Part shown: in pieces, positions 4,326-56,644 of the stretch | Numbering within the stretch: position 1 is the stretch's first letter | How the letters are laid out: every line of letters begins with the position of its first letter | NCBI GenBank assembly: GCA_037447605.1 | Contig: CM074809.1 | Location: forward strand, 1,416,689-1,480,688 | Source: Zygnema circumcarinatum SAG 698-1b | Taxonomy: Eukaryota; Plantae; Zygnematophyceae | Reading direction: 5' to 3' | DNA length: 64,000 nucleotides | The notes under the pieces: model-generated | The model's input: the letters and a program-made list of their open reading frames with translations, nothing else | Databases searched by the model: none | What the model was told of the DNA's origin: nothing | Program-made: the position numbers and the translations under genes

Positions 4326-4518
4326 CACAGGTCGAACCATTGGATGGCAATGGTTGGAGGTCTAATGGTTGCCAACCATTGGATCCAATGGTTCCAAACC
4401 ATTGGAATGTTTGGCAACCATTGGCATTCAATGGTTCGGAACCATTCGAATGGTTGTTTCGGTCCGGCGCCAATGGTTGGCAGCCATTCGAACGGTTGAT
4501 CTAATGGCTCGATCTGTG
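4326..4518. mobile_element. Short palindrome-rich dispersed element, copy A (AACCATT/AATGGTT units; possible MITE)
   Basis: Alternating AACCATT and AATGGTT. Ends CACAGGTCGAACCATT (4326-4341) and AATGGCTCGATCTGTG (4503-4518) are 14/16 inverted. Flanks AAATAGTG/AAATAATG. 32 bp (4447-4478) are identical to 30697-30728. Confidence 0.6.
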
Positions 4519-10601: not shown

Positions 10602-10913
10602 TTGTGAGGTTCTTTCTGGGTGTTGTGCTTGCATGAGAAGATTTTGATGTACGAGCAGCATTGGACTGCGCACGTCTCACGGCCCGAAATAGACTGCACT
10701 GTGATAACAAGGCTCTGTCTGGATGTCGTACTTGACATGGGAAGTTTTCGTATTCGAAGAGCATTGCACTAAGCGCATCTCACGGCCCGAAATAAACTGC
10801 ACTGTGATTATAAGGTTCTTTCTGGGTGTCGTACTTGACATGGGAAGTTTTTCGTGATCGAGCAGCATTGGACTAAGCACATCTCACGGTCCGAAATAGA
10901 CTGCTCTGTGATT
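10602..10913. repeat. About 3 copies of a 103-104 bp tandem repeat
   Basis: CTCACGG(C/T)CCGAAATA recurs at 10676, 10779 and 10883. GTCGTACTTGACATGGGAAGTTTTCGT and GAGCAGCATTGGACT are also repeated. Confidence 0.85.
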
Positions 10914-11488
10914 ACACCACATGAACCAGTGCCCAACTATGTTGCGAATTATACAACACCGAAGCAACTCCAAAACCGACTGCACTACAGGAAGCTGCTG
11001 CCACCCCTCGGCAGACCAATCCCATTCCCAATCCCTGCCAAACGACTTGTCCAAAACCCTGCAACAGGGTGCAAGCGCGCACTTCAGCTGAACTGCAATG
11101 CAGCATCTGCTGAAGAGTAGCATGCAGCCCAGCGCAGCAGTGCGCCTGTTTCCAGGAACAATGGCACCTCCAGCTTCCGAGCCACAGCCCCAGAATGGAC
11201 TCGCTCCCTTGTTCCAGATTGAGCAAAGAGCGCCCCACACGAACTATCATGCACATAGATGAAAGTGACTTCTCTAGAGCCGGCAAATACCATACAAACA
11301 TCGGACTTCCGAGCAGGCGAATGTTCCCTTGCGAGCTGTGTACAGCTAGTTCACCCCATTCTTACTGGAAGCACAGAAGTCCCGGTGACGGACCGTTAAC
11401 GGCATCACTAACAAAGGTGGATTCACCTCAATCTTTAGCTATGCCACCTGTTATGGCATTCTCTTCTTCTCTTCCACGACACACTGAC

Positions 11489-30532: not shown

Positions 30533-30801
30533 CACGGTGGACCATTGCATCGGCAACCATTGGACAACCATTGGACAACCATTGCATGGCAATGGTCGGA
30601 CGATCCGATGGCTGGCAACCATTGCCATCCAATGGTTTAACCAACCAACCATTTGAGTGGTTGGCAAGCATTGGCATCCACTGGTTACGAACCAGTCGAA
30701 TGGTTGTTTCGGTCCGGCGCCAATGGTTCGCAACCAGTCAAATGGCCGGCAAGCATTGCATCACAACCGTTGCGATGGTTGATGCAATGGCCCGACCTGT
30801 G
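30533..30801. mobile_element. Short palindrome-rich dispersed element, copy B
   Basis: Same ACCATT/AATGGT units. Identical 32-bp core at 30697-30728. Right end AATGGCCCGACCTGTG (30786-30801) resembles the copy A right end. Confidence 0.55.
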
Positions 30802-39802: not shown

Positions 39803-40519
39803 GGCGGGCCAGACAGTGTTCCTCCCTCCCTCCCACCCTCTCTCCCTTCCCCTCTCTCTCTCTCTCTGCCTCTCGCCCTCCCTCCCTGCGGGAGAGGCCG
39901 CGGTGTGGCCCGCCCGCCCGCCCAATGCGGCCGCGCAGCAGAGCAGTTGCAGCGAGTCAGACCGACCGTACGCCAGACAGGCCGTACCAATGCAAATCCG
40001 TACATTCCAGCTCCGTACGTGATTGTACTTCTGAGTTGTACGGAAATGTACGGTCCTCGCGACGGCACGAACCAGCTGCAGCCGCCTCTGCACGGGCCTC
40101 CCCGCTGCGGTAGCGTGTCGGGATATACCGAGTATTCGGAATGCTGTAATGACGTCACCGACAAACGTATGCTCGCTCGTATTAGGAAATGGATGTGGCA
40201 TGGATCTCACGATGGCGATGATGCCATCAAATGGACATGGACAACATCATCATCATGGGGAACCACGAGGAATTAACTGGTCGCAAAGGAATCAAACCTA
40301 ACAAAAGTTGACGAACTGAGGGCATGGACCAATGAATGGTTTGGATCAATGCCCCTTCCTTTTCCTTGTTTACTGAGGGCGATCCGTAGTAGTCCCGTAG
40401 AGCCGAACTTTCCCCCTCCCGTGTTGTTGTTTGGCCCGAGGGTCCGGCCCTGCCCAAACCACGAGGGACCGTACCGGGCGACGTACGGAACGTCGCAGTC
40501 CGAGACCGCGATAAAGTAA

Positions 40520-41115
40520 GGAAAATTCTATTCTCACACCTTTTTTGTCTACACACAGACCTTTTTTCACCGGGCAGATTTCAAAATAGTAAAAAATGCA
40601 TTAAAGCAGAATCTAATCAGAATTTGCCATGTTATACAAAATAATACGTGGCAGGTGCTGATTAGTCGAGGCTCATAATGTACGGTATTTCGCCTTTCCT
40701 CGAAGCTGTTAAAGTAACATTTGTACAACATTTGTACAACAACAACAACAACAACATTTGTAAGGACCTTTGAGCTGGCTTGTGTGTGACACGTGGGCGC
40801 GTGCCATTTGCTGGGACCGAGACCAGCTGCAGATCGAACGGTGATCTGCCGTGGTGCGATCTGCGAGAGAATCGACGGCTGATGTTAAACGCACGTGTAA
40901 AGTACGCACACCCGCGATCGATCTCGTGGCGAACGGATCTTCCGCTCCGCGCGGATTGTAAAAAAACTCTGCCCGACGGAAAACGGGTGTGTGTCGATTC
41001 CCAAAAAGTGTTAAAAGAGCATTTCCTGCTTTAATCCTCCTTTTACTATTTTGAAATCTGCCCGATGAAAAAAGGTCTGTGTGTAGACAAAAAAGGTGTG
41101 AGAATAGAATTTTCC
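40520..41115. mobile_element. Non-autonomous DNA transposon (MITE, probably Mutator-like), 596 bp
   Basis: 75-bp TIRs at 40520-40594 and 41041-41115 with 74/75 identity, starting GGAAAATTC. Perfect 8-bp TSD TAAAGTAA at 40512-40519 and 41116-41123. No transposase inside. Confidence 0.92.
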
Positions 41116-41150
41116 TAAAGTAAACAGCGACCGTTTGCCGTCGACCGCGG

Positions 41151-42152
41151 TGTAGCACAAGATAAGTGGGGTTAAACAAAGACTGCTGAGCTAGCTGCAG
41201 GTGCTGTACGGCCACACGCGCGTCCGTGCTGAAACTAATGAAGGGTTGGGTTGGTTCTGTGGGTCTGCCTGCAGCATAGAGCCAGGATCCGGGGGATTCA
41301 GAGGTACGCGCAGCGGAAGACGTAGGGATCCTGAAGATGTTCCCACCGGCGGCTGGACTCGATGCGCGAAGAGCCCTTCCTTGGGGGCTCTCTTCCCCTA
41401 TCCTCTCCTTGGCCAGTCTCTTAGCTAGGCTTCTAGTTATCATCGGTCATTGGAATAAGCGTAGGGCAGATTAGGACAAGATGGCAGCTTTGCATAGTGA
41501 CAGCAAAGGGAAAGCAGTGCTCAACTTAGATAAAGGTTGCATTTTGGAAACTCACCCCAGCCAGCGGTTGGCTGAGGAATGTCATTACAATGAAATTGTC
41601 TTCTCACTGAAATCTTTGTCTAGCTGGGCTGAATGGGACGTCTAAATGCTATCAGCAAGAAGAGTCTTTCTCTCTCTCTCTCTATCTATGGCATGGAACT
41701 CTCTCTCTCTCTCTCTCTCTTACTTAGCATCTGTTGCTGTAACTGAAGAGGAAGGAAAAGAAGAAAGAAGAACAAGAAGACAAAGCACACAGCAAATACA
41801 AATACTAAGCCCAGCACTAAAAGACAAAATATATCATTGACATCCCACTCATTAACACGACAACACATCTTGAAGCTCAGGGACGACAGCCGACGGTGAA
41901 CCGCCCACTTGTAGGCCTGACTGACTACAACCCGAGCCTTCGGAGAGGTCAGAACTGACGATTATCGCGGCCTCATGCGGTGTTCCCGAGTGCGCCGCTT
42001 GCTGGATGGTGCTGCCGCTCGCGGCCGCGACGCAGGCGCGCCTCTTCGCACTCCGCTGCAGCTCAAATTCTCGCCGACCCTACACGAAGATGCATATGTC
42101 AAGTACAATTGAACGGACGCGGATCCGTCGAACGCAGCTCCGTTACGCTACA
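41151..42152 (-). repeat. LTR copy A (3' LTR, complete TG...CA, 1002 bp)
   Basis: 41160-42152 is homologous to 48112-49107. It ends (minus strand) CTTATCT-TGTGCTACA and contains (TC)n tracts. Confidence 0.9.
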
Positions 42153-42618
42153 TCTGTAGCACATGCCGGGGGGGGAAACAAGCGCACGCCCCTGCGGGCG
42201 CCAGGAAGAAGAGACAAAGGGGAGGGGAGGGGCCCATGATGACGTGGACAGGGGGACCGCGCGAGAGGAGTCGGCGGCCGTCTGGAGAAGCTTCCGCGTA
42301 CATTCGGAAATGGGGAGTATCGGCGGGATCGGAGGTGGAGGAGGGAGTAAGACAAATTCGAAATCGAAAGTTACGGCCGACAGGCGCAATGTGGGCGAAG
42401 CGGCAAAAAGTGGCGGGAATTAGAAATGGACCAATGAGGAGTCGTCATGGCAGAGGGGGTACGAGGAGACCGCGCTGTCGGTCGCAAACGCTCAGCCATC
42501 GCGGGGGGGAGGAACCGCTGACGTGGCGGCACGAATGTCGATCCAGTGTGAACGCCAGCGCCGGGCGTGCCCACTAGAGTCAGGAGCCTCCGAAATGATG
42601 GCCCAACCNNNNNNNNNN

Positions 42619-45600
42619 TCGAGGTGGTGGGAGGCCATGGAATCTAGGGTTTGGAAGCGGAGGGCCAGGAGCTGAAGCTGGGCGACCCGATCCGGGGGAG
42701 GCGCGTCATCGTAGAAGAGGGGCTCAGCAGAGAGGAGGTCAAGGGGAATGCGGGGCTTACGGCCATAGAGGAGCTCGTAGGGAGAGAAGCCCGTGGAGGA
42801 GTGGACGGAGGTGTTATACGTGAAGACCAGGGAGGGGATGACCTCGCGCCAGTCCGCCTCCAGCTCCGCGCAGCCGCGGACGCACGCATCCTTGACCGTC
42901 TGAATGGTACGTTCTGCAAGCCCATTCTGCCAGGGGGAGTAGGGGCTGGAGGTGTGGTGAATGATGCGGAAGTCCTGCATGAGCTTGGCAAATGCCCCCT
43001 TGTATTCGGTGCCGTTGTCAGAGTGGACAGAGTAGGGTAGAGAGTGGCGGTGAATGATGGCCGTCAGGAGGCGAGCAGAGTGGATGGAATGCTTAGATTC
43101 TGTCGTATGAACTTCTACCCACTTGGTGTATCTGTCCACGGCTAGGAAGACCCGAATGTAGCCAGAGGGGGTGCCGAGCTGGGGGATAGAAAAGGTGTCG
43201 ATGTTCCAGTCTTCGGCGACGCCGCGTATTGGGATCTCACCCATCTCCAGGGGTTGGCGGTCGGGGGGAGCAGAGCGCTTGCCGCGTTGGCAGCGGGTGC
43301 AGGTTTCGATGTAGCGGTTCACGGCGCCATGGAGGCCGGGCCAATAGTAGCGTTCCTGCAGCAGAGCCACCATCTTCTTCTGGCCGAGGTGGAAGCCTGC
43401 AGGTTGGGCATCGTGGGCGACGTCCAGGATTTCCAGACGCTCGTTAGGGAATGGGACGGGAAGGCCGGAAGGAATGTAGAGAATCTGTCCGTCATCATCG
43501 ACAGAGAAGTTCCGAGCGCGGCGGAGCAGCCGAGCCCTCTCGGTATCCGTGACAAAGGGGGGCAGCGTGCGGGTCATAACGTAGCGCAGAAGGGAGGAGT
43601 CTGAATGGACGTCATTGGCGCTGGGGAAATGGGGAGGAAGTAAGGGAGCGTCGCCATCGTCATCCATGAGGATTTCCCACGGATCCGCATGGGGGTGGCC
43701 GTGGGTGAAGTCAGGGTCCTCCCAGCGATGGAGGGTGGTGGCGGTGGCCGGAATATCGATCAGCCCATCTGCGAATAGGACATCATGCAGGGCTTGAGCG
43801 GCAATAAAAATCTCAATGGGAAGATGCTCAGGGTTCAAGAGGGTGGGTGGAGGGATGGGTTCAGGAACGGCCGGATCGTGACAGAGGAGGGGAGCCGAAG
43901 GATTGCGACTGAGGCCGTCAGCATTGCCGTGACTACGGCCGGGACGGTGGGTGACCTTAAGCACATTATACTCCTCCAACTTCATCACCCATCGTGCAAA
44001 CTTAGGTCGTAGGGTAGCCATGATGTGCAGCCAAGTGAGGGGCATGTGGTCAGTCCGGATGATAACGGGCTGGTAGGCCGTGAAGAGCTTGAACTTCTCG
44101 AGTGCCCAGAGGATAGCCGCGGCCTCTCCCTCAGTAGGGCTATACTTGGTCTCGGTTTCTGAACAGACCCTGCTTGCAAAACTGACCGGGTGTTCCCCAT
44201 CTGAGAATGCTTGGCTGGCCACTGCCCCAAAGCCTGTCTGACTCCAGTCGGCGTCAATAATGGTGGGAAGGGTGGGGTCAAATTGATGCAGGCAAGGAGC
44301 CTGAAGGAGGGCACTCTTGAGCGCGTGGAAGGCCAAATCCTGCGCGCGGCTCCATTCGTAGTGGACTCCGTGCTTCTCCAGGGCATGTAGGGGACGCGCA
44401 ATAAGGGCATAGCCCTTGATGAACTGGCGAGGAGAATGAGGTGAGCTTAACTGAGCTGAGTGAGGGTTTGTGGAATCGGCATGAGGGCAATCGCTTCAAT
44501 CTTATCGGGTGATGGTTTCAGGCCATTGATGCCGAGGCGGTGCCCGAGATGAGTGATCTCCTGGTGGCCCCATTTGCACTTCTTGGGTGCAATCTTCAGA
44601 CGCGCACTGATGAGCTGTTGCAGGACTTGGTCAATGTGTTGCAGGTGGGAGGACCAGTCCTTGCTGTGGATCGAAGCATCATCGACATAAGGCTCGCAGA
44701 AGGCACGACAGGGGCCGAACACCTGGTTGGCCAGGCGCTGGTGAGTTTGACTGGAATTCTTGAGCCCGAATGGAAGCACTGTCCACTGCACAAAGCGCGT
44801 GGCTGTGCGAAGCCCTGTCTTGCAACGATCGGCCTGCCGAAGGGGTATCTGCCAGAAGGATTTCTGCATGTCAAGGGCCGAGAACCACCGGTCATCAGGG
44901 GAGACGCCGTGGAGAATCAGGTCCACATCCGGTAATGTGTAGGGATCCCACTTCGTTATTGCATTCAGCTTTCGGTAGTCCCCACAGAAGCGGAGTGTGC
45001 CATCCGGCTTTGGGGGCAGAACGGCCGGGCTGGCCCACGGCCCTTCTCCAGGTTCCATCAATCCGGCAGCCACGTTCTCGTCGATCTGTCGTTCGACATC
45101 GGCCTGCTGTGCGGCGGAGAAGCGGTAGGGAGTCAGGGTCATCACGGGAGGCGCATCCCCCGTATCAATGTGGTGCTCAATCAGGTGAGTCTTGCCGATG
45201 TCGAGTGAATGTCTCGCGAAAACTAGGTGATTTCGGCGCAGCACTTGGCGTAGTTGGGAATGCTTGATCGGGTCTGAGAGGACCGCAGGTCCCAATCGCA
45301 TCTGCCCCTCTATTTCCAGCCACTCCTCATCACCGATGGTCTCATGAGGTGGAAAGCTGGGTGCAGGCAGCGCTGGCGTCAACAGTTCTTCCGTCGGCGT
45401 CTCGAGAGCTGGAATCGGAGGAGCAGGAGGGGGAGTCTCGTAATCGGTATCAGAATTGGCCGATCCATAAGAAGGATGGGGGCTGCCGACCGCCTGGTAC
45501 ATGGTGATCTCCGGGTAGGAGACCTGCGCAGTGGCGTGGCGCTTGGGGAAGGCGGAGGTGGTAAGGGACTCGAGGATGATGGGGAAGGAGCAGTCTGTCC

Positions 45601-45713
45601 CGCCAGCAGATAAGTGCAGTTGACATGTGGCAAAGTCGATTTGTGCTCCCATCGCGATGAGCCAATCTGAGCCCAGCAGGATAGAATAGTGTTCAGCGGC
45701 TGTGATGACTGCA
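42619..45713 (-). CDS. pol: Pol of unit 1: end of aspartic protease, RT, RNase H, integrase (bounded by N gaps; broken near 44425-44455)
   Basis: PR tail ILLGSDWL. RT LDMQKSFWQI, LPFGLKNS, YVDD. RH DADWSQTGFGAV, YSPTEGEA, RTDH, NADGLSR. IN HHCC (HDAQ..FHLG..CTRC), WNIDTF, HSDNG, NGLAER. Confidence 0.9.
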
Positions 45714-45723
45714 NNNNNNNNNN

Positions 45724-48029
45724 GGATTGACGTGCATCTCTTCGGTCGCCGGTGCCGTCGGCTCTGGCTGCGCCGCTGTCGGCTCCTCTTCATTGAGATC
45801 TTCAATTTCCTCCTCAGGCAGGGATCCCAAGGGATGACCCGTGGAGGGAGGGATGACTGAAGTTCTTCGGACAGGGGTGGCGACCGGTGGAGCCGTGCCC
45901 GAGGAACTGGCGCCGTTGACATTGGCAGGGAGGAATGGCAGGGGATGAGAATGAGGATCGCTTCGGTTGACAGGGAGCCTGCGAAGGGCAGTTGCAATCT
46001 CGGCGATCCGGGCTTGAGCATCCGCTTCAGAAGTGATGGGGGATTCGGACAAGGCCGGTTGAAATGCCGCGGCAACCTCGGCAGTGCGTGATCGGGCAGC
46101 AGGATCGGGCTCAGCACCCAATACGTTTGACAGGGAGGGGGAGTCCATGGGGTGCAGATGGATAGGTGGTCGTTGCAGGATGGTGTAAGCGGGTGAAGGA
46201 GGTGGAGGCGGGCGAAAGGGAGCCGGAGCTCTCGGTGGTGTGGGAGCAGCCGGGAGCATATCCATGAAGGTGATCTCTGCAGGTGAGCTCCCTTCAGCTG
46301 CCTCTTTCCCCTTTCGGGCCTTCTCACTTGAGAGTCTCCGCATGCACACACGGGCATCATGTCCCGTGATCTGACAGAAGGTGCAGGTCCATGGTCCGCA
46401 ACGCAGCCGCGGATTATGATTCAGGCCGCAGGCAAGACAGACGCCCTCCGGAACCCCTGCCTCTGTCATCCGACGGCGCAGATCGGCCCTGGCAGCTTCT
46501 CTCTCTTCGGGTGTGCGATCGGAATAAGGAGCCCGATATCCTGGACGAGAAACATCTGGTATGTGAGGATTCACCGCCGGCTCAATGGGATGCGCCGGAT
46601 CATGAGGGTATGGGGAAAGGGGAAGGGGCTTGGTTGTGCTGGCTATGGCCAGAGGCTGCACCACAGGGGCTGTCCGGACGTCCTGAGCAGTGACGCCGGA
46701 GAAGGAAGGCTTGTTCCGAGTAGATGTAGCGTAGGGATCGAACAACTGTTGATTCTGCGTCTTCAAGAACTGTAGAGGCTCTACGGGGCCGTGACCTGCA
46801 GCGTTCATGTATGTGGTCGCACATGCCGGCGCCCTCTCTCTATCCTTCCTAGCCTCGCCCTGTCTGCTCAACAATGCCTGGGCATCTGCTGGTGGGTTGT
46901 CTCGCAGCTCACGATCCAGGTGGAGATCCTTCTCGCTGATGGCCTTGCGGAACCACTGGAGCACTTCGGAAAAGTCAGGCAAGTTCTCGATCGTATTTGC
47001 CATGCGCACAAAGCGCTCAGTGAATTCAAACAGCCGCTCATCACTGTAGCATTCTATGTAGCGAAGTCGGTCCAGCACAGTGATCGGATCTGAAATCCAG
47101 CGTTGTCTGAAAGCTTGCTTGAATGTGTCCCTTGTCAGGGTGGCGACGACATCCGCCTTGTGCCAGTTTCGGGACAGCTTCCAGTTGACGGCCTCTCCTT
47201 CCAGCGCTCCAAGGGCCAGCTTGATCCATTGGTCCTCCTTCAGGTCTGCTTGCGCTGCCTTCTCCTCAAGGTGTCTCAGCCATGCTTCTGCATCTTCCTG
47301 CTTGCCGGTGAAGCCTCTTGTGATGATGCCCGTGGTATCCCTCGCCTCACTTTTTTCAGGAATCAAGGCTATCAATTTGGTCATCATCTCTTCCATCTTG
47401 CTGGGGAACTCAGATCTGACTCGTGTGCTTCTCTGCAGGTTGGTTCGAAAGCTGGAGGGTCCTTGCGATCGTCCTGCCCTTGCCCCTGAAGTCGCTCGCC
47501 TGGGGCTGCCGGATGGGTAAGTTGTGAATGCCGGAGGTGAGGGTGTCTTCTGATGATTCCCTTGCTCTGCTGTAGGACTGCGTGCAGCTGCAGTGCTTGA
47601 AGGGACTCCTGGTGCAGTAGTTATCCGACTGAGATCCCGTGGGTTCTGTTTCTGTGGGGCCGCGGGGGGGACCTCAGGTTCGAACGGTACTCCTCTCTTC
47701 ACGGCATCGGCGGCCGTGACAGCGACTGGGCAAGCTGCCAGCTTGATCATGCGGCGTGCATACTGCCAGCGGAGTTGGTGGCCATCGCTGCCTAGACGGA
47801 GTCGCTGCAGCTCTTCAATCGACTCGATCTGCTCAAGGTAAGCCAGACTGGGATAAGGGTTCTCTTCGGTGATGCCCATTTTCAGTCGCTCTCTGACTGC
47901 CTCTTCCTCTGAGTCTGAATCCGTCCTCGGATTTCCGATCGCCTGTTCTTCTTCTTCTTGAGGTGCCAAGTCTTCCTCTGAATACTGATGAAGATCTGCT
48001 TGTCCCTCTTGCTGCAGCTCTTCATCCAT
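45724..48029 (-). CDS. gag: Gag of unit 1 with capsid domain and two Zn-knuckle-like motifs
   Basis: ORF 45693..48395 reads through the PBS (YLGIRA); likely ATG at 48029. FTGKQEDAEAWLRHLE..LEGEAVNW..FKQAFRQRW. CLACGLNHNPRLRC and CTFCQITGHDARVC. Confidence 0.85.
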
Positions 48030-48098
48030 GGCGGCTGTGACACGGGTCACAGGATCGGCAGCCTCACGTATCAAGGTACGTGGATCTGCCAAACCTTC

Positions 48099-48111
48099 GG
48101 CTCTGATACCA
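48099..48111 (-). other. Primer-binding site complementary to the tRNA-iMet 3' end
   Basis: TGGTATCAGAGCC on the minus strand directly after LTR copy B. This is the canonical plant iMet PBS. Confidence 0.92.
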
Positions 48112-49107
48112 AGATAAGTGGGGTTAAACAAAGACTGCTGAGCTAGCTGCAGGTGCTGTTCGGCCACACGCGCGTCCGTGCTGAAACTAATGAAGGGTTG
48201 GGTTGGTTCTGTGGGTCTGCCTGCAGCATAGAGCCAGGATCCGGGGGATTCAGAGGTACGCGCAGCGGAAGACGTAGGGATCCTGAAGATGTTCCCACCG
48301 GCGGCTGGACTTGATGCGCGAAGAGCCCTTCCTTGGGGGCTTTCTTCCCCTATCCTCTCCTTGGCCAGTCTCTTAGCTAGGCTTCTAGTTATCATCGGTC
48401 ATTGGAATAAGCGTAGGGCAGATTAGGACAAGATGGCAGCTTTGCATAGTGACAGCAAAGGGAAAACAGTGCTCAACTTAGATAAAGGTTGCATTTTGGA
48501 AACTCACCCCAGCCAGCTGAGGAATGTCATTACAATGAAATTGTCTTCTCACTGAAATCTTTGTCTAGCTGGGCTGAATGGGACGTCTAAATGCTATCAG
48601 CAAGAAGAGTCTTTCTCTCTCTCTCTCTATCTATGGCATGGAACTCTCTCTCTCTCTCTCTCTCTTACTTAGCATCTGTTGCTGTAACTGAAGAGGAAGG
48701 AAAAGAAGAAAGAAGAACAAGACAACAAACCACACAGCAAATACAAATACTAAGCCCAGCACTAAAAGACAAAACAGCATCACTGACATCCCATCTACTT
48801 AACACTGACAATAGATCTTGAGTCTTAGTAGTGACAGCCTCTGATTGGCTAACTGCCCCATTAAAAAGCTCCTGATGACTGCGTCTGAGACCTTTGGATA
48901 GGTCAACGAATGATCTAGGGGGGCCTCACTGCGTGTTCCCGGTGCGTTTCCTGGATCTGCCTGTCGTGAGCGCCAACGCATGGCGCCGCCTTCTCTCAAT
49001 CTCCGTTGGCAGCTCCTGGATTCCGTTGATCCGTGACACGGAAGAGGCATACGTCAAGTACAATTGAACTGACGCAAATCCGTCGAACGCAGCTCCGTTA
49101 CGCTACA
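48112..49107 (-). repeat. LTR copy B (shared middle LTR; lacks terminal TGTGCTACA)
   Basis: Starts TGTAGCGTAACGG on the minus strand and ends CCCCACTTATCT, abutting the PBS. Confidence 0.9.
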
Positions 49108-49109
49108 TC

Positions 49110-52100
49110 TGTAGCACATGCCGGGGGGGGGAAACAAGCGCACGCCCCTGCGGGCGCAATGAAGAAGAGACAAAGGGCAGTGGAGGAGCCAATGATGACG
49201 TGGACGGGGAGCCGCGCGAGGCGAGTCGGCGGCCGTCTGGAGAAGCTTCCGCGTACATTCGGAAATGGGGAGTATCGGCGGGATCGGAGGTGGAGGAGGG
49301 AGTAAGACAAATTCGAAATCGAAAGTTACGGCCGACAGGCGCAATGTGGGCGAAGCGGCAAAAAGTGGCGGGAATTAGAAATGGACCAATGAGGAGTCGT
49401 CATGGCAGGGGGGGTACGGAGGAGGCCGCGCTGTCGGTCACGACGCTCAGCCATGGGGGGGGAGGGAGCTGCTGGCGTGGCAGGGCGGATGTCGTGGTGT
49501 GAGCGCCAGCGCCGAGCAGTTCCCCACTCAAGAGTGAGCCTTCCGGAATGATGGCCCCAGCAGCTCAGAATCTTGGCGGACCGGCACAAATGAAGGGGCC
49601 CAACACGGGAAAAGCCCGTTAGAGTCAGTTTCCGCAAGACTCCTGGGCCAAATGAGCTGATGTGGCGCTCCTGATTCCGCGGGAGGCGGCACGTCGCGCC
49701 TCAAAGTCAGTGAGTTGTCGTCTGTGCGCGCGTTTGAGGTGGTGAGAGGCCATGGAATCTAGGGTTTGGAAGCGTAGGGCCAGGAGCTGAAGCTGCGCTA
49801 CCCGATCCGGGGGAGGCGCATCATCGTAGAAGAGGGGTTCAGCAGAGAGGAGGTCAAGGGGAATGCGGGGCTTACGGCCATAGAGGAGCTCGTAGGGAGA
49901 GAAGCCCGTGGAGGAGTGGACGGAGGTGTTATACGTCGTGAAGACCAGGGAGGGGATGACCTCGCGCCAGTCCGCCTCCAGCTCCGCGCAGCCGCGGACG
50001 CACGCATCCTTGACCGTCTGAATGGTACGTTCTGCAAGCCCATTCTGCCAGGGGGAGTAGGGGCTAGAGGTGCGGTGGATGATGCGGAAGTCCTGCATTA
50101 GCTTGGCAAAGGCCCCCTTGTATTCGGTGCCATTGTCAGAGTGGACAGAGTAGGGGAGAGAGTGGCGGTGAATGATGGCCGTCAGGAGGCGGGCAGAGTG
50201 GACGGAATGCTTAGATTCTGTGGCGTGAACCTCTACCCACTTGGTGTATCTGTCCACGGCTAGGAAGACCCGAATGTCCACCGGGGGATACCGAGCTGGG
50301 GGTAGGAGGGTGTCGATGTTCCAAGTCTCAGCGACGGCCGCGTAGTGGGATCTCACAGTCTCCAGGGGTTGGCAACCTGGGAAGGAGGTTTGGTTGGCAG
50401 CGGGTAGGCTTGATGCACAACAGCGCCATGGAGGACCGGGCCCAGTAGTGGCGTATGCCAGCAGACCACCATCTGCTGGCCGAGGTGGAAGCCTGCAGGT
50501 TGGGCATCATGGGCGCGGTGGGCTCCAGGCAGGTAGAGATGGACGGGAAGGCCGGATGTGGAGTCTCTCGTCATCATGGACAGAGGCCCCGACACGGCGC
50601 ACCGAGCCCTCTCAGTCTGGGTGATAAGGGGGCGGCGTGCGGGTCGTCACGTGGCGCAGAAGGGAGTCTGAATGGACGTAGTTGGCTGGGGAAATGGGGA
50701 GGGGAGTCAAGGAAGGCGCACACGTCACGCATCAGTGGGGGTTTCACGGATCCACATCAGGGTGGCCGTGGGTGAAGGTCAGGGTCCTGCGCAGGCGATG
50801 GAGGCTGGTGCGGCGATAGCAGAATATCGATACAGCCCATATGCGATAGGACATGCATTCCAGGCTTACAGACAGCGATGAAATCTCAATGGGAAGATGC
50901 TCAGGGTTCAAGAGGGGGGGTGGGGGGATGGGCTCAGGAACGGCCGGATCGTGACAGAGGAGTGGAGCCGACGGATTTCGACTGAGGCCGTCTGCATTGC
51001 CGTGGCTCCGTCCGGGACGGTGACTGACCTTAAGCACATTATACTCCTCCAACTTCATCACCCATCGTGCAAACTTAGGTCGGAGGGTGGCCATGATGTG
51101 CAGCCAAGTGAGGGGCATGTGGTCAGTCCGGATGATAACAGGCTGGTAGGCCGTGAAGAGCTTGAACTTCTCGAGTGCCCAGAGGATAGCCGCGGCCTCT
51201 CCCTCAGTAGGGCTATACTTGGTCTCGGTTTCTGAACAGACCCTGCTTGCATAACTGACCGGGTGTTCCCCATCTGAGAATGCTTGGCTGGCCACCGCCC
51301 CAAAGCCTGTCTGACTCCAGTCGGCGTCAATAATGGTGGGAAGGGTGGGGTCAAATTGATGCAGGCAAGGAGCCTGAAGGAGGGCACTCTTGAGCGCGTG
51401 GAAGGCCAAATCCTGCGCTCGGCTCCATTCGTACTGGACTCCGTGCTTCTCCAAGGCATGGAGGGGACGCGCGATAAGGGCATATCCCTTGATGAACCGG
51501 CGATAAAATGAGGTGAGCCCCAAGAAGGACTTGAGCTGAGTGAGGGTTTGTGGAATCGGCATGAGGGCAATCGCTTCAATCTTATCGGGTGATGGTTTCA
51601 GGCCATTGATGCCGAGGCGGTGCCCGAGATGAGTGATCTCCTGGTGGCCCCATTTGCACTTCTTGGGTGCAATCTTCAGACGCGCACTGATGAGCTGTTG
51701 CAGGACTTGGTCAATGTGTTGTAGGTGGGAGGACCAGTCCTTGCTGTGGATCGAAGCATCATCGACATAAGGCTCGCAGAAGGCACGACAGGGGCCGAAC
51801 ACCTGGTTGGCCAGGCGCTGGTGAGTCTGACTGGAATTCTTGAGCCCGAATGGAAGCACTGTCCACTGCACAAAGCGCGTGGCTGTGCGAAGCCCTGTCT
51901 TGCAGCGATCGGCCTGCCGCAGGGGGATCTGCCAGAAGGATTTCTGCATGTCAAGTGCCGAGAACCATCGGTCCTCAAGGGAGACGCCGTGAAGAATCGG
52001 GTCACGTCCGGCAATGTGTCAGATCCCGCTTCGTCTGTGCATTCAGCTTTCGGTCATCCCCGCGAAGCGGAGTGTGCATCGTGAGCGCGCAGACGGCGCG

Positions 52101-54500
52101 GCTGGCCCACGGTTTTCCTCCAGGTTCCCATGATCCGGCAAGCCGCGGTTCTCGTCGATCTGTCGTTCGACATCGGCCTGCTGCGCGGCGGAAAAGCGGT
52201 AGGGAGTCAGGGTCATCACGGGAGGCGCATCCCCCGTATCGATGTGGTGCTCAATCAAGTGAGTCTTGCCGATGTCGAGTGAATGTCGTGCGAAAACTAG
52301 GTGATTTCGGCGCAGCACTTGGCGTAGTTGAGAATGCTTGATCGGTATGGAGGGACTCAGAGGCTGGTCGCATCTGCCCCTGTCTCCGGCCACTCTCATC
52401 ATGATGATCTCATGGGGTGGAAAGCTGGGTGCAGGCAGCGCTGGCGGCAACAGTTCTTCCGTCGGCGTCCCAAGAGCTGGAATCGGAGGAGCAGGAGGGG
52501 GAGTCTCGTAATCGGTATCAGAATTGGCCGATCCATAAGAAGGATGGGGGCTGCCGACCGCATGGTACATGGTGATCTCCGGGTAGGAGACCTGCGCAGT
52601 GGCGTGGCGCTTGGGGAAGGCGGAGGTGGTAAGGGACTCGAGGATGATGGGGAAGGAGCAGTCTGTCCCGCCAGCAGATAGGTGCAGTTGACATGTAGCA
52701 AAGTCGATTTGTGCTCCCATCGCGATGAGCCAATCTGAGCCCAGCAGGATAGAATAGTGTTCAGCGGCCGTGATGACTGCATTCACTGTGGCTCCCATCT
52801 CGCCAAGACTGATGACCACTTGGGCGCTGCCCAATCCTTCATGTAAGCTCCCTTCAACTCCCACATATCGGGGGATGGGCTCAAGTGTCTTGTCCAACTT
52901 AACCCCTGCCGCCTTCATCACAGGCTTGGACAGAACTGTGCGCATAGCCCCCGTGTCAATCATGGCTTTACTGGGATGACCGTTGAGCCATACATTGACA
53001 ATGATTCGCACGTTGGGTGTGGGGATCAGAGGGAGGATCTGAATCTGGCGAGGAGGATGGCGGGGAGAGCGAACTGGGTCCGGAGGAGGCGCCGTCGCCA
53101 TGTGGTGGATATCGGCTGGCGAGGGGACGTCCGGAGGAGATGCCATAGGAACCGTGGGAGGCCGCGGGGTGGCTGCTACAGTGTCCCGGCTAGCTTTCGA
53201 AGCTGCGCGGCAGCACCTGGGTCAGCTGCATGCGGCTGTGACAAGGTGATGCCGATCTAGGCCTTGTTCTCCCATGAGTGATACACCAGTGCGTCTCTGA
53301 GGGGATAGGCCATCTGCTGAGGGATGGTCGCGACCCGGCTGCTAAGTGGGAAACGGGCTGCTCGAGGACGATGTGGAGGGTTGACGTGCATCTCTTCGGT
53401 CGCCGGTGGCGTCGGCTCTGGCTGCGCCGCTGTCGGCTCCTCTTCATTGAGATCTTCAATTTCCTCCTCAGGCAGGGATCCCAAGGGGTGACCCGTGGAG
53501 GGAGGGATGACTGAAGTTCTTCGGACAGGGGTGGCGACCGGTGGAGCCGTGCCCGAGGAACTGGCGCCGTTGACATTGGCAGGGAGGAATGGCAGGGGAT
53601 GAGAATGAGGATCGCTTCAAACTGGCCGGGAGCCTGAGGGCAGTGCAATGTCGCGATCCGACTTGAGCATGGCCCTCAGAGATGGGGGATTGGACAAGGC
53701 CGGTTGAAATCCGCAGCGCCTCGGCAGTGCGTGATGGGCAGCGGAGAAGCGGGCTCAGCACCCAATACGTTTGACATGGAGGGGGAGTCCATGGGGTGCA
53801 GATGGATAGGTGGTCGTTGCAGGATGGTGTAAGCGGGTGAAGGAGGTGGAGACGGGCGAAAGAACCGGAGCTCCGGTGGTGTGGGAGGGAGCATGTCATG
53901 AAGGTGATCTATACAGGTGAGCTCCTGGCTGCCTCTCCCTTTTCGAGGCTTTCTCACTTGAGAGCTTCCGGATGCCTGGCAGTGGTGCTACGTGATCTGG
54001 CAGAGGGTGCAGGTCCATGGTCCGCAACGCAGCCGCGGATTATGATTCAGGCCGCAGGCAAGACAGACGCCCTCTGGAACCCCTGCCTCTGTCATCCGAC
54101 GGCGCAGATCGGCCCTGGCAGCTTCTCTCTCTTCGGGCGTGCGATCGGAATAAGGAGCCCGATATCCTGGACGAGAAACATCTGGTATGTGAGGATTCAC
54201 CGCCGGCTCAATGGGATGGGCCGGATCATGAGGGTATGGGGAAAGGGGAAGGGGCTTGGTTGTGCTGGCTATGGCCAGAGGCTGCACCACAGGGGCTGTC
54301 CGGACGTCCTGAGCAGTGACGCCGGAGAAGGAAGGCTTGTTCCGAGTAGATGTAGCGTAGGGATCGAACAACTGTTGATTCTGCGTCTTCAAGAACTGCT
54401 GGTAGAGTCGATCCTGTCGTGGATCTGTAGCGTTCATGTAATGTGGTCGTACATGTCGGTTGCCTCTCTCTTGATCCTTCTGAATTCGCTCTGCCCTGTC
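49110..54500 (-). pseudogene. pol: Internal gag-pol region of unit 2, heavily frameshifted (real decay or uncorrected sequence)
   Basis: Homologous to unit 1. Fragments: IN 49625..50356, RT/RH 50744..51949, protease MIDTGAMRTVLS in 52043..53146, Gag Zn knuckles 53988..54530. Confidence 0.8.
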
Positions 54501-54510
54501 NNNNNNNNNN

Positions 54511-55254
54511 GCTAGGCTTCTAGTTATCATCGGTCATTGGGATAAGCGTAGGGCAGATTAGGACAAGATGGCAGCTTTGCATAGTGACAGCAAAGGGAAA
54601 AACAGTGCTCAACTTAGATAAAGGTTGCATTTTGGAAACTCACCCCAGCCAGCGGTTGGCTGAGGAATGTCATTACAATGAAATTGTCTTCTCACTGAAA
54701 TCTTTGTCTAGCTGGGCTGAATGGGACGTCTAAATGCTATCAGCAAGAAGAGTCTTTCTCTCTCTCTCTCTATCTATGGCATGGAACTCTCTCTCTCTCT
54801 CTCTCTCTTACTTAGCATCTGTTGCTGTAACTGAAGAGGAAGGAAAAGAAGAAAGAAGAACAAGAAGACAAAGCACACAGCAAATACAAATACTAAGCCC
54901 AGCACTAAAAGACAAAACAGCATCACTGACATCCCATCTACTTAACACTGACAATAGATCTTGAGTCCTAGCAGTGACAGCCTCTGATTGGCTAACTGCC
55001 CACTGAGAGGCCTGACTGACTACGTGGAGCCTTCGGATAGGTCAACGAATGATTATCGGCGGCCTCATGCGGTGTTCCCGAGTGCGCCTTGCTGGATGGT
55101 GTGCTGTTCCGTGGGCCGCCAACGCATGGCGCCGCCTTCTCTCAATCTCCGTTGGCAGCTTCTGAAATTCCGTTGATCCGTGACACGGAAGATGCATATG
55201 TCAAGTACAATTGAACGGACGCGGATCCGTCGAACGCAGCCCCGTTACGCTACA
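54511..55254 (-). repeat. LTR copy C (5' LTR, truncated by the N gap at 54501-54510)
   Basis: Matches 48377-49107. Ends on the plus strand with CCGTTACGCTACA followed by TSD GCGG. Confidence 0.9.
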
Positions 55255-56644
55255 GCGGCCGTCGTCGCCCGACCTTACCATACCGTACGGCTGGGCTTGT
55301 CCGTCCGTCCGTACAACATCGTGGCCCTGCGTCACGGTCGCTGGCGTCATAACCCGAACAGCGAGTGCTTCTGTTGGAGTGCCAACGCGGAGGGAGGTCG
55401 AAGCCGTTGCTCGCTCGCGCGGTCGCTTGGGGAGGGAGGGAGGGAGGAAGCGAGGTCTTTCTTCCTTCGCCTGCCAAGGTGCAATGCGCTGAACCTCTCT
55501 ATGGCTCCTTTCCCTCTGCGGCTCTTCCCTTCTCTAGGCTTTGCCACCTCTTTGCTCCTTCTTAGCCCCTCTCTTCCAACTTATGAATCCCAAAAGTCTA
55601 GACCTTAATTCTGTGTCTTGCCTCGGATGGATGCGATTTTTTCCCTTCATTAGGGGACCATTGGTGTGTAGTTACGGTTGTTTGTGCACATGGTTGCATT
55701 TGCTTTTCGCAATCGATTTCTTCAAGCTGCTTTGAAAGGTTGGTTTCCCTGCTTTTGCGTCTTGCTCTGCTCAATGCAGCTGGCTCAACTGTGGCTCAGT
55801 GGACGACACATGAACCGCGTTAATTCAACACCTTCCGCTTGCACAGACTAGCATCACGAATGTAGCTCAGGCATCTTAACCAAGAATTATGGTGGGGCCG
55901 TTGTTTAAGCCTTAGATTGGAGGCAATGGCTCTCTTTCGTGAATTCTTCTTCGGGTGTTGCCGAAGGGTGATTAGAAAGACATACCGGATTTTATAAATT
56001 CAAGTTTGTCTTTCACTAATTCGTAGGCATGCCACTCTTGTGCTTATGTACACAAGCGAGTTTCTTGAGGCAGGCACATTGCTTGCGCTGAAATGTAGAA
56101 GGGGCTATACATGAAATTATTAATCACAATTCAAAGCGGAGGTCGTCGAAAACTGATTCGGAAACTATCAAGGGCATAGACCGTAACTTACGCAAGCTGT
56201 TGGCAAAATTAATTGATTTTCCAATCAATTGATTGAACGATTGATTAAATCAAGGGCTCGTATGTGATAGCACTTTTACATACTGTGAAAATGTTTCCCT
56301 TCTTTTTTAGCATATCAGATATGAGCTTAGTTGAGCCTGTTTACGGTCAATATGTTCCTCTCCTATGCAGAAGTAAGTTAACTTGTTTTCCTTGATTTGG
56401 AAGTACGTTCGTTTAGTATATAGTACAGCTTCCGGTATTGAATGTTCGTCAGCAACAGGGCAAAACTGGCGTCAATGCAGCCATGAATGACCAGGAGAGA
56501 ATCACGTGATGACGTACGGTTCCTCGCATGGAACGAACCCCCTTTCTATTTTCCACATGACAGGGGCCTTATGATGCAGGCGTGAAATGCAGAATTGATG
56601 CTAACTGCCAAGGGTCGTCTCGTCAACTGTATGAACCTTTCTAA

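Follow-up and report, generated by a model that had tools for sequence, protein, structure and literature searches.

A Ty3/gypsy array of Zygnema circumcarinatum with a split terminal 9-mer may point to integration from joined ends

In the canonical replication model of long terminal repeat (LTR) retroelements, the cDNA ends on the right at the base beside the tRNA primer, and both new LTRs take their U5 end from the 5' end of the RNA. DIRS, Ngaro and PAT elements are not known to make a target site duplication (TSD), and TOC1 of Chlamydomonas is said, from work by Day et al. in 1988, to have an unusual LTR arrangement. In the copy-out-paste-in elements IS3 and IS911, a DDE transposase of the integrase superfamily inserts the element from a circle, in which the two ends are abutted a few bp apart. 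TOC1 has been named a non-autonomous DIRS element (PMC9940879). PAT and Ngaro elements carry split direct repeats in the order A1-internal-B1-A2-B2, the pattern expected from a circle with the repeat B A that is opened inside this repeat (PMC7192593). In DIRS-1, an internal complementary region copies the termini side by side and is essential for retrotransposition (PMC7192593). Among retroviruses, the integrase of prototype foamy virus (PFV) cleaves a palindromic LTR-LTR junction in vitro, and just two nucleotides are lost between the conserved CA and TG (PMC1180852); HIV-1 integrase tetramers likewise cut their cognate LTR-LTR junction in vitro (PMC1905944). Here we compare with these systems a Ty3/gypsy array in a stretch of 64,000 nucleotides (referred to as the window) from Zygnema circumcarinatum SAG 698-1b (assembly GCA_037447605.1, contig CM074809.1, positions 1,416,689 to 1,480,688 of the forward strand). 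On the basis of its sequence, we lean towards the view that the LTR of this family is circularly permuted by 11 nt between the form made by reverse transcriptase (RT) and the form cut by integrase, and that the element may be integrated from a joined-end intermediate.

The array consists of one Ty3/gypsy family on the minus strand, arranged as LTR-internal-LTR-internal-LTR (window 41151-55258), and its three LTRs form long direct terminal repeats of about 1 kb each. Coordinates on the array are quoted in element sense, which is the minus strand. The outer boundary is marked by a 4-bp TSD, CCGC, on both sides (55258..55255 and 41150..41147); this is a single pair of flanks, for which the probability of a chance match is about 1/256. 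The LTR body, referred to as A, begins with TGTAGCG at 55254, 49107 and 42152 and ends with CTTATCT at 48112 and 41160. The integrated element reads TGTAGC...GCTACA with a terminal inverted repeat of 6 bp, and both its TG...CA terminal repeats and its short TSD are those of a Ty3/gypsy element.

The major peculiarity lies in a 9-mer, referred to as B, which is found at one kind of LTR end and is missing from the other. At the outer 3' end of the array, A is followed by the copy B2, TGTGCTACA (41159..41151), and then by CCGC (41150..41147). Because the TSD adjoins B, and CCGC also directly precedes LTR-A, B lies inside the element and not in the target. An origin of B2 as target DNA is ruled out, since the TSD comes after B rather than after A. 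At the junction 48112/48111, A directly abuts the primer binding site (PBS) TGGTATCAGAGCC, and B is absent. Exact copies of B are found instead at 42163..42155 and 49118..49110; in both cases GA comes next, and A after it. The features of the array are as follows.

55255..55258, minus strand: TSD CCGC on the 5' side of the array, identical to 41147-41150
54511..55254, minus strand: LTR-A, the outermost 5' LTR; TGTAGCG directly after the TSD, no B-GA upstream, last ~264 nt inside a gap
54501..54510, no strand: assembly gap, with ~1.5 kb missing (end of LTR-A, its PBS, start of gag)
49119..54500, minus strand: internal region of unit 2; partial gag, protease, RT, RNase H and integrase, split into several open reading frames (ORFs; from Pfam and the ORF list)
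49108..49118, minus strand: B-GA of unit 2; TGTGCTACA + GA directly upstream of LTR-B, with a run of 9 C before it
48112..49107, minus strand: LTR-B, the middle LTR; A part only, ending CTTATCT with the PBS next, without B
48099..48111, minus strand: PBS TGGTATCAGAGCC, of the plant-type initiator tRNA-Met kind
42164..48098, minus strand: internal region of unit 1; gag-region ORF, RT, RNase H and integrase, with two assembly gaps and one frameshift near 44450-44495
44534..45013, minus strand: reverse transcriptase domain RVT_1 of unit 1 (E = 4e-26)
42933..43208, minus strand: integrase catalytic core rve of unit 1 (E = 4e-13; Integrase_H2C2, E = 1.5e-16)
42153..42163, minus strand: B-GA of unit 1; TGTGCTACA + GA directly upstream of LTR-C, forming GCTACA-GA-TGTAGC with the LTR start
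41160..42152, minus strand: LTR-C, A part, 993 nt
41151..41159, minus strand: B2, terminal 9-mer TGTGCTACA of the 3' LTR, the right integrase end (...CA)
41147..41150, minus strand: TSD CCGC on the 3' side, read in the sequence

A first-pass annotation, which had been made from the letters of the window, had proposed each part of this layout, and each part is confirmed: the body TGTAGCG...CTTATCT followed by B at 41151-41159 and a TSD, now read as CCGC on both flanks; the absence of B before the initiator tRNA-Met PBS, where A directly abuts TGGTATCAGAGCC; and an exact B 2 bp upstream of the next LTR in both units (42155-42163, 49110-49118), producing GCTACA-GA-TGTAGC. The LTR ends are therefore unequal by direct reading, LTR-B being CTTATCT/PBS and LTR-C being CTTATCT-TGTGCTACA/TSD, with one junction of each kind. 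Taken in order, the array displays the split direct repeat layout A-PBS-internal-B-GA-A-B, in which B is just 9 nt long.

These short sequences are specific to the element. The PBS TGGTATCAGAGCC at 48111..48099 is the sole exact 12-mer match in the window and stands, as in other Ty3/gypsy elements, directly after a 5'-type LTR; the same 12-mer is given as the PBS of plant retroelements and badnaviruses (PMC7215508, PMC3852365). The 9-mer B occurs exactly four times on both strands of the 64 kb, and three of the four occurrences are at the element sites described above. The 14-mer GCTACAGATGTAGC is exact only at the two upstream B-GA sites, and when up to 2 mismatches are allowed, we observed 4 matches against a shuffle mean of 0.47, a count that none of 100 window shuffles reached. 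The palindromic CA-NN-TG site GCTACA-GA-TGTAGC (42147-42160 and 49102-49115) is likewise unique in the window; it is an internal copy, not an LTR-LTR junction. When the two units were aligned, they agreed throughout B-GA, about 45 nt before it and about 30 nt after it, except for one extra C in the C-run, whereas elsewhere the same two units diverge by up to 35% per 100 nt.

The coding capacity is that of a Ty3/gypsy element. Pfam matches in unit 1 are RVT_1, RT_RNaseH, Integrase_H2C2 and rve, and those in unit 2 are protease, RVT_1, RNase H and rve, so that pol has the Ty3/gypsy domain order protease-RT-RNase H-integrase (PR-RT-RNaseH-IN). The D,D35E residues and an upstream HHCC zinc finger are legible in the integrase translation of unit 1, which identifies it as a DDE enzyme. 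The combination of a DDE integrase with a TSD, as the first-pass annotation had it, is borne out by the rve match and by the duplicated CCGC. We found no tyrosine recombinase, and no other nuclease or recombinase, in any ORF of the array on either strand. The gag-region ORF, about 890 aa long, has zero Pfam matches. An ATG at 48395 inside the LTR opens an ORF that runs through the PBS into gag (47796-48395), and the corresponding frame in LTR-C (40709-41443) continues into flanking DNA.

Compared with canonical Ty3/gypsy elements (Metaviridae), the Zygnema element shares the PR-RT-RNaseH-IN order, the D,D35E motif with the HHCC finger, the TG...CA ends with a 6-bp inverted repeat, the short TSD and the initiator tRNA-Met PBS after the 5' LTR. 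In contrast, it has no polypurine tract before the 3' LTR, its 5'-type LTR lacks the last 9 nt of the 3' LTR, and a copy of these 9 nt plus GA occupies the place of the polypurine tract. With PAT and Ngaro elements it shares the split direct repeats, and the likeness proposed earlier holds for the layout. It does not extend to the enzyme or to the insertion: those elements use a tyrosine recombinase, whereas here a DDE integrase is the sole recombinase encoded, B measures just 9 nt, opening would take place at a CA-NN-TG palindrome, and CCGC is duplicated at both ends as a 4-bp TSD, which departs from the TSD-less insertion of the DIRS, Ngaro and PAT groups.

At the place where plus-strand priming is usual, no polypurine tract precedes the 3' LTR: only 9 of the 15 nucleotides before A and 3 of the 15 before B are purines. 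Upstream, the closest run with at least 11 purines in 12 is at a distance of 1.2 kb in unit 1 and of about 4 kb in unit 2, and pyrimidines make up 67% of the final 400 nt of the internal region. The earlier reading of a C-run instead of a polypurine tract is thus correct. In the 3' half of the element, strong polypurine tracts are confined to the LTR (41664-41725 and 41388-41410, and correspondingly 48609-48670 and 48340-48362). They comprise two (GA)n runs behind a CT-rich run complementary to them, an arrangement that shows up in Rfam as weak, miRNA-like noise, and a 23-nt tract resembling a polypurine tract about 230 nt before the LTR end. We considered the two (GA)n runs and the 23-nt tract (41388-41410) as the real polypurine tract and rejected them, since on paper they yield A-PBS-internal-B or Y-Y and never an A/B junction. 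These tracts might prime internal plus strands.

Other local features were noticed around B. The untranslated region before B (42164-42253) is C-rich, and the minus-strand DNA has a G8 and several G4-G5 runs at the usual place of the polypurine tract; from their sequence, these G-runs are a potential G-quadruplex. The first ~50 nt of the LTR (42100-42152) contain words resembling the A and B boxes of tRNA genes (TAGCGTAACGG, GTTCGA), and within them GACGGA...TCCGTT makes a short hairpin. Searches with ARAGORN and Rfam yielded no tRNA here and no tRNA-like or structured RNA at the junction, the fold of the junction RNA was no better than that of shuffles (z = +1.1), and a tRNA-like or structured junction RNA was dropped on these grounds. 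A primer translocation like that of hepadnaviruses was also rejected: within the 52 nt upstream of B, homology to the LTR is limited to a 12-mer, one mismatch included, that lies about 40 nt before B.

In order to see which replication route yields the observed layout, we compared it with the canonical route. Because A directly abuts the PBS, a canonical right LTR must end in ...CTTATCT, with no CA for the integrase, and B at the insertion end needs another source. Copying of B from the tRNA primer was rejected, since this route would place the PBS, TGGTATCAG..., and not B on the plus strand. We then replayed reverse transcription by script on the real sequence and compared the landmark order and the termini with those observed. 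When the plus strand starts at A or at GA, the linear right end is ...CTTATCT without CA, and joining the ends creates no usable site. With a start at the first base of B, reverse transcription makes the repeat B-GA-A, and the joined ends read CTTATCT/TGTGCTACA-GA-TGTAGC. Both termini and the observed order (A, A/PBS, B-GA-A, A/B) come out in one case only, in which the plus strand starts at B, the ends are joined and the junction is cut at CA^GA^TG. The replay upholds the earlier claim that canonical replication cannot supply B at the insertion end. Of the non-standard steps suggested with that claim, integrase cutting at a pre-formed circle or concatemer junction reproduces the layout in silico, provided that the plus strand starts at B, whereas a template jump via the shared TG gained no specific support and has no defined stop.

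These results suggest the following cycle. Minus-strand DNA would be primed by initiator tRNA-Met, which would leave the cDNA right end at ...CTTATCT. Plus-strand DNA would begin at the first T of B, or else an 11-nt B-GA RNA would serve as primer and be copied back; either start would produce the RT-made repeat B-GA-A. The cDNA in this model would have the left end TGTGCTACAGA... and the right end ...CTTATCT, and its joined junction would read CTTATCT/TGTGCTACAGATGTAGC. Joining could occur by ligation of a 2-LTR circle, by head-to-tail joining or by an end-to-end jump of RT, in each case giving ...CTTATCT/TGTGCTACA-GA-TGTAGC.... The DDE integrase would then nick after each CA of the palindrome, 2 nt apart, and obtain two 3'-processed ends at once, with recessed CA-3'OH ends and 2-nt 5' overhangs, a normal substrate for strand transfer. 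Insertion with a 4-bp stagger and loss of GA would generate A-PBS-internal-B-GA-A-B, and the following transcript would carry B-GA again, closing the cycle. Joining would be obligatory in such an element, because the linear RT product would have no usable right end. We give about an even chance to the broader proposal that this is an LTR lineage with a DDE integrase that is unable to integrate its linear transcript, in which end joining is obligatory, the junction is opened at CA-GA-TG, and the plus strand is primed without a polypurine tract.

The proposed cut resembles the cleavage of 2-LTR circle junctions by the PFV and HIV-1 integrases, which also act on a palindromic junction and cut after both CA in one reaction to give two 3'-processed ends, the PFV spacer being 2 nt as well (PMC1180852, PMC1905944). 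The retroviral linear cDNA, in contrast, has both complete ends, which makes the circle route at most optional, whereas here the linear product would be without a usable right end. With DIRS-1, the Zygnema element shares an internal copy of both element termini, placed side by side. The DIRS-1 region, however, is complementary to LTR ends that are inverted, and its presumed role is that of a splint for single-stranded cDNA, while the copy in Zygnema is direct and measures only 9+2+6 nt. IS3 and IS911 differ further, being bacterial DNA elements without reverse transcription, and their homology to the present system is limited to the fold of the catalytic core.

Since the array is part of a draft assembly, we estimated the size of each gap by aligning each unit to its sister unit. 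The gap at 42609-42618 hides about 170 bp (sister 49558-49735), that at 45714-45723 hides about 600 bp with the greater part of the protease (sister 52782-53377), and that at 54501-54510 hides about 1.5 kb (sister 46849-48375), into which the final ~264 nt of LTR-A would fall, together with the PBS that belongs to LTR-A and the gag start. All gaps are at least 440 bp away from the junctions at issue. ORFs that are read across the Ns are artificial joins, because none of the gaps is continuous sequence; nor can any of them be read in frame. Along their length, the two units form a mosaic in which blocks of 99-100% identity alternate with blocks that, per 100 nt, are 65-85% identical. The U3 of LTR-C, about 270 nt long, is strongly unlike that of LTR-A and LTR-B. 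Two simple origins of the array do not agree with this picture. Unequal crossing-over with even decay is contradicted by the mosaic identity profile, and RT read-around on two co-packaged RNAs predicts that LTR-A equals LTR-C, yet LTR-C is the outlier. Judged from its sequence, the array could be a real heterogeneous tandem, could stem from ectopic conversion or could be a draft assembly that is chimeric. Clean sequence surrounds the short junctions, which would be genuine k-mer paths of the family even if the array as a whole were unreal.

Several points weigh against integration from joined ends. The joined-end intermediate is deduced here from integrated DNA, and the junction that it would contain, A-B-GA-A between two LTRs, is not present in the 64-kb window. 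The LTR/PBS junction is readable at one place only in the window, as the other one lies inside a gap, and the assembly of the array is a mosaic with many gaps. In the replay, cutting at the second palindrome of the 2-LTR circle gives A-B-GA-A-PBS-internal-B, a predicted dead-end by-product; because this second palindrome would be identical to the first, the integrase would need to recognize sequence beyond the 9 nt of B. Tandem LTRs joined as ...CTTATCT-TGTGCTACA-GA-TGTAGC... and copies that stop at the internal B, lacking a 3' LTR, are the two by-products predicted by the replay. Meanwhile, the sequence offers no explanation for plus-strand priming after ...CCCCCCCCGGCA, and retroviral 2-LTR circles are generally held to be dead ends.

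The single readable A/PBS junction also fits a canonical family in which the LTR is A+B at both ends and the 9 nt before this PBS were lost by a TG...TG microhomology deletion or through an assembly error. Under this explanation, B-GA before the 3' LTR would be an 11-nt extension of the left end, which the integrase trims from linear cDNA. The presence of TG on both sides of B in the hypothetical ancestor would favor such a deletion, and an assembly with gaps and noisy blocks would favor such an error. The deletion, however, must take B exactly, within a part of the LTR that is 99-100% identical among copies; accidental loss of precisely B from so conserved a part is unlikely, at about 1e-4 by a rough estimate. 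The absent polypurine tract and the exact upstream copy of B stay unaccounted for, and the integrase would need to remove 11 nt instead of 2. We consider a canonical family with a local loss quite improbable. Another explanation keeps the layout logic of the replay and dispenses with a ligated circle: RT would jump from the right end (...CTTATCT, perhaps extended by a TG copied from the primer) onto B-GA-A of the same or of a second molecule, and the A/B-GA junction would arise as a concatemer-like extension that is subsequently cut by the integrase. TG is common to the start of the PBS and to B, and the array, provided that its assembly is correct, would be a multi-unit form of the element. 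On the other hand, homology between the end of A and what lies upstream of B amounts to 2 nt at most, the extension has no defined stop, and the template is already double-stranded by that stage. The window holds nothing to tell a jump from a ligation, and we regard the jump as an unlikely source of the junction.

The mosaic of 99-100% and 65-85% blocks, the strongly deviating U3 of LTR-C and the three gaps in the array raise another alternative, namely that the odd junctions arose secondarily, from an old tandem array, ectopic conversion or chimeric assembly in a high-copy family, with no special replication step. Every junction, however, is shorter than 30 nt and lies within well-matching sequence, and the matching TSD sits right at the TG and CA outer ends. 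Rearrangement among canonical elements, moreover, cannot put the exact right terminus 2 nt before the LTR in both units, nor strip it from the PBS side. We find a secondary origin of the junctions very improbable, and we retain integration from joined ends as the explanation that we favor.

We also looked for the same layout elsewhere. Full-text searches of the literature returned no gypsy element described with such split ends or with such an absence of the polypurine tract. In metagenome contigs, no further copies matched the exact pattern of either the conserved LTR head or the conserved LTR tail. A protein word search with RNaseH-IN gave a best match of 31% identity, which is not the same family, and one with the ORF spanning LTR, PBS and gag (NPTYLGIRAEG without B, NPTYLVLHGIRAEG with B) gave no match. 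A scan of viral contigs for relatives provided nothing usable, and the contigs of two distant relatives, L001 and L002, contain no LTR pair.

Since the 1980s there has been debate over whether LTR-LTR circle junctions can be genuine integration substrates, and in the case of retroviruses the question is usually answered with no. If our explanation is true, an abundant element whose layout makes the joined form obligatory would change that answer; it would be a natural case of the long-rejected route with a circle as integration precursor, and the circle-junction question would become testable in a free-living alga. Retroelements with DDE integrases and those with tyrosine recombinases would then have reached the split-repeat solution independently, and the element would reveal plus-strand priming without a polypurine tract. 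In practice, LTR finders that demand identical LTR ends and a polypurine tract will misplace the boundaries of this high-copy family.

The window contains further repeats. At 40519-41116 lies a unit like a miniature inverted-repeat transposable element or a foldback element; its 91-nt inverted repeats are 95% complementary with 416 nt between them, and the unit ends 34 bp away from the site where the array is inserted. A 103-nt unit occurs at 10607-10916 in three tandem copies that are 71-74% alike. Two pairs of dispersed short repeats were noticed as well, 4397-4495 / 30647-30745 (86% identical, rich in AACCATTGG-type words) and 72-202 / 40827-40957 (84% identical); both are probably small non-autonomous elements.

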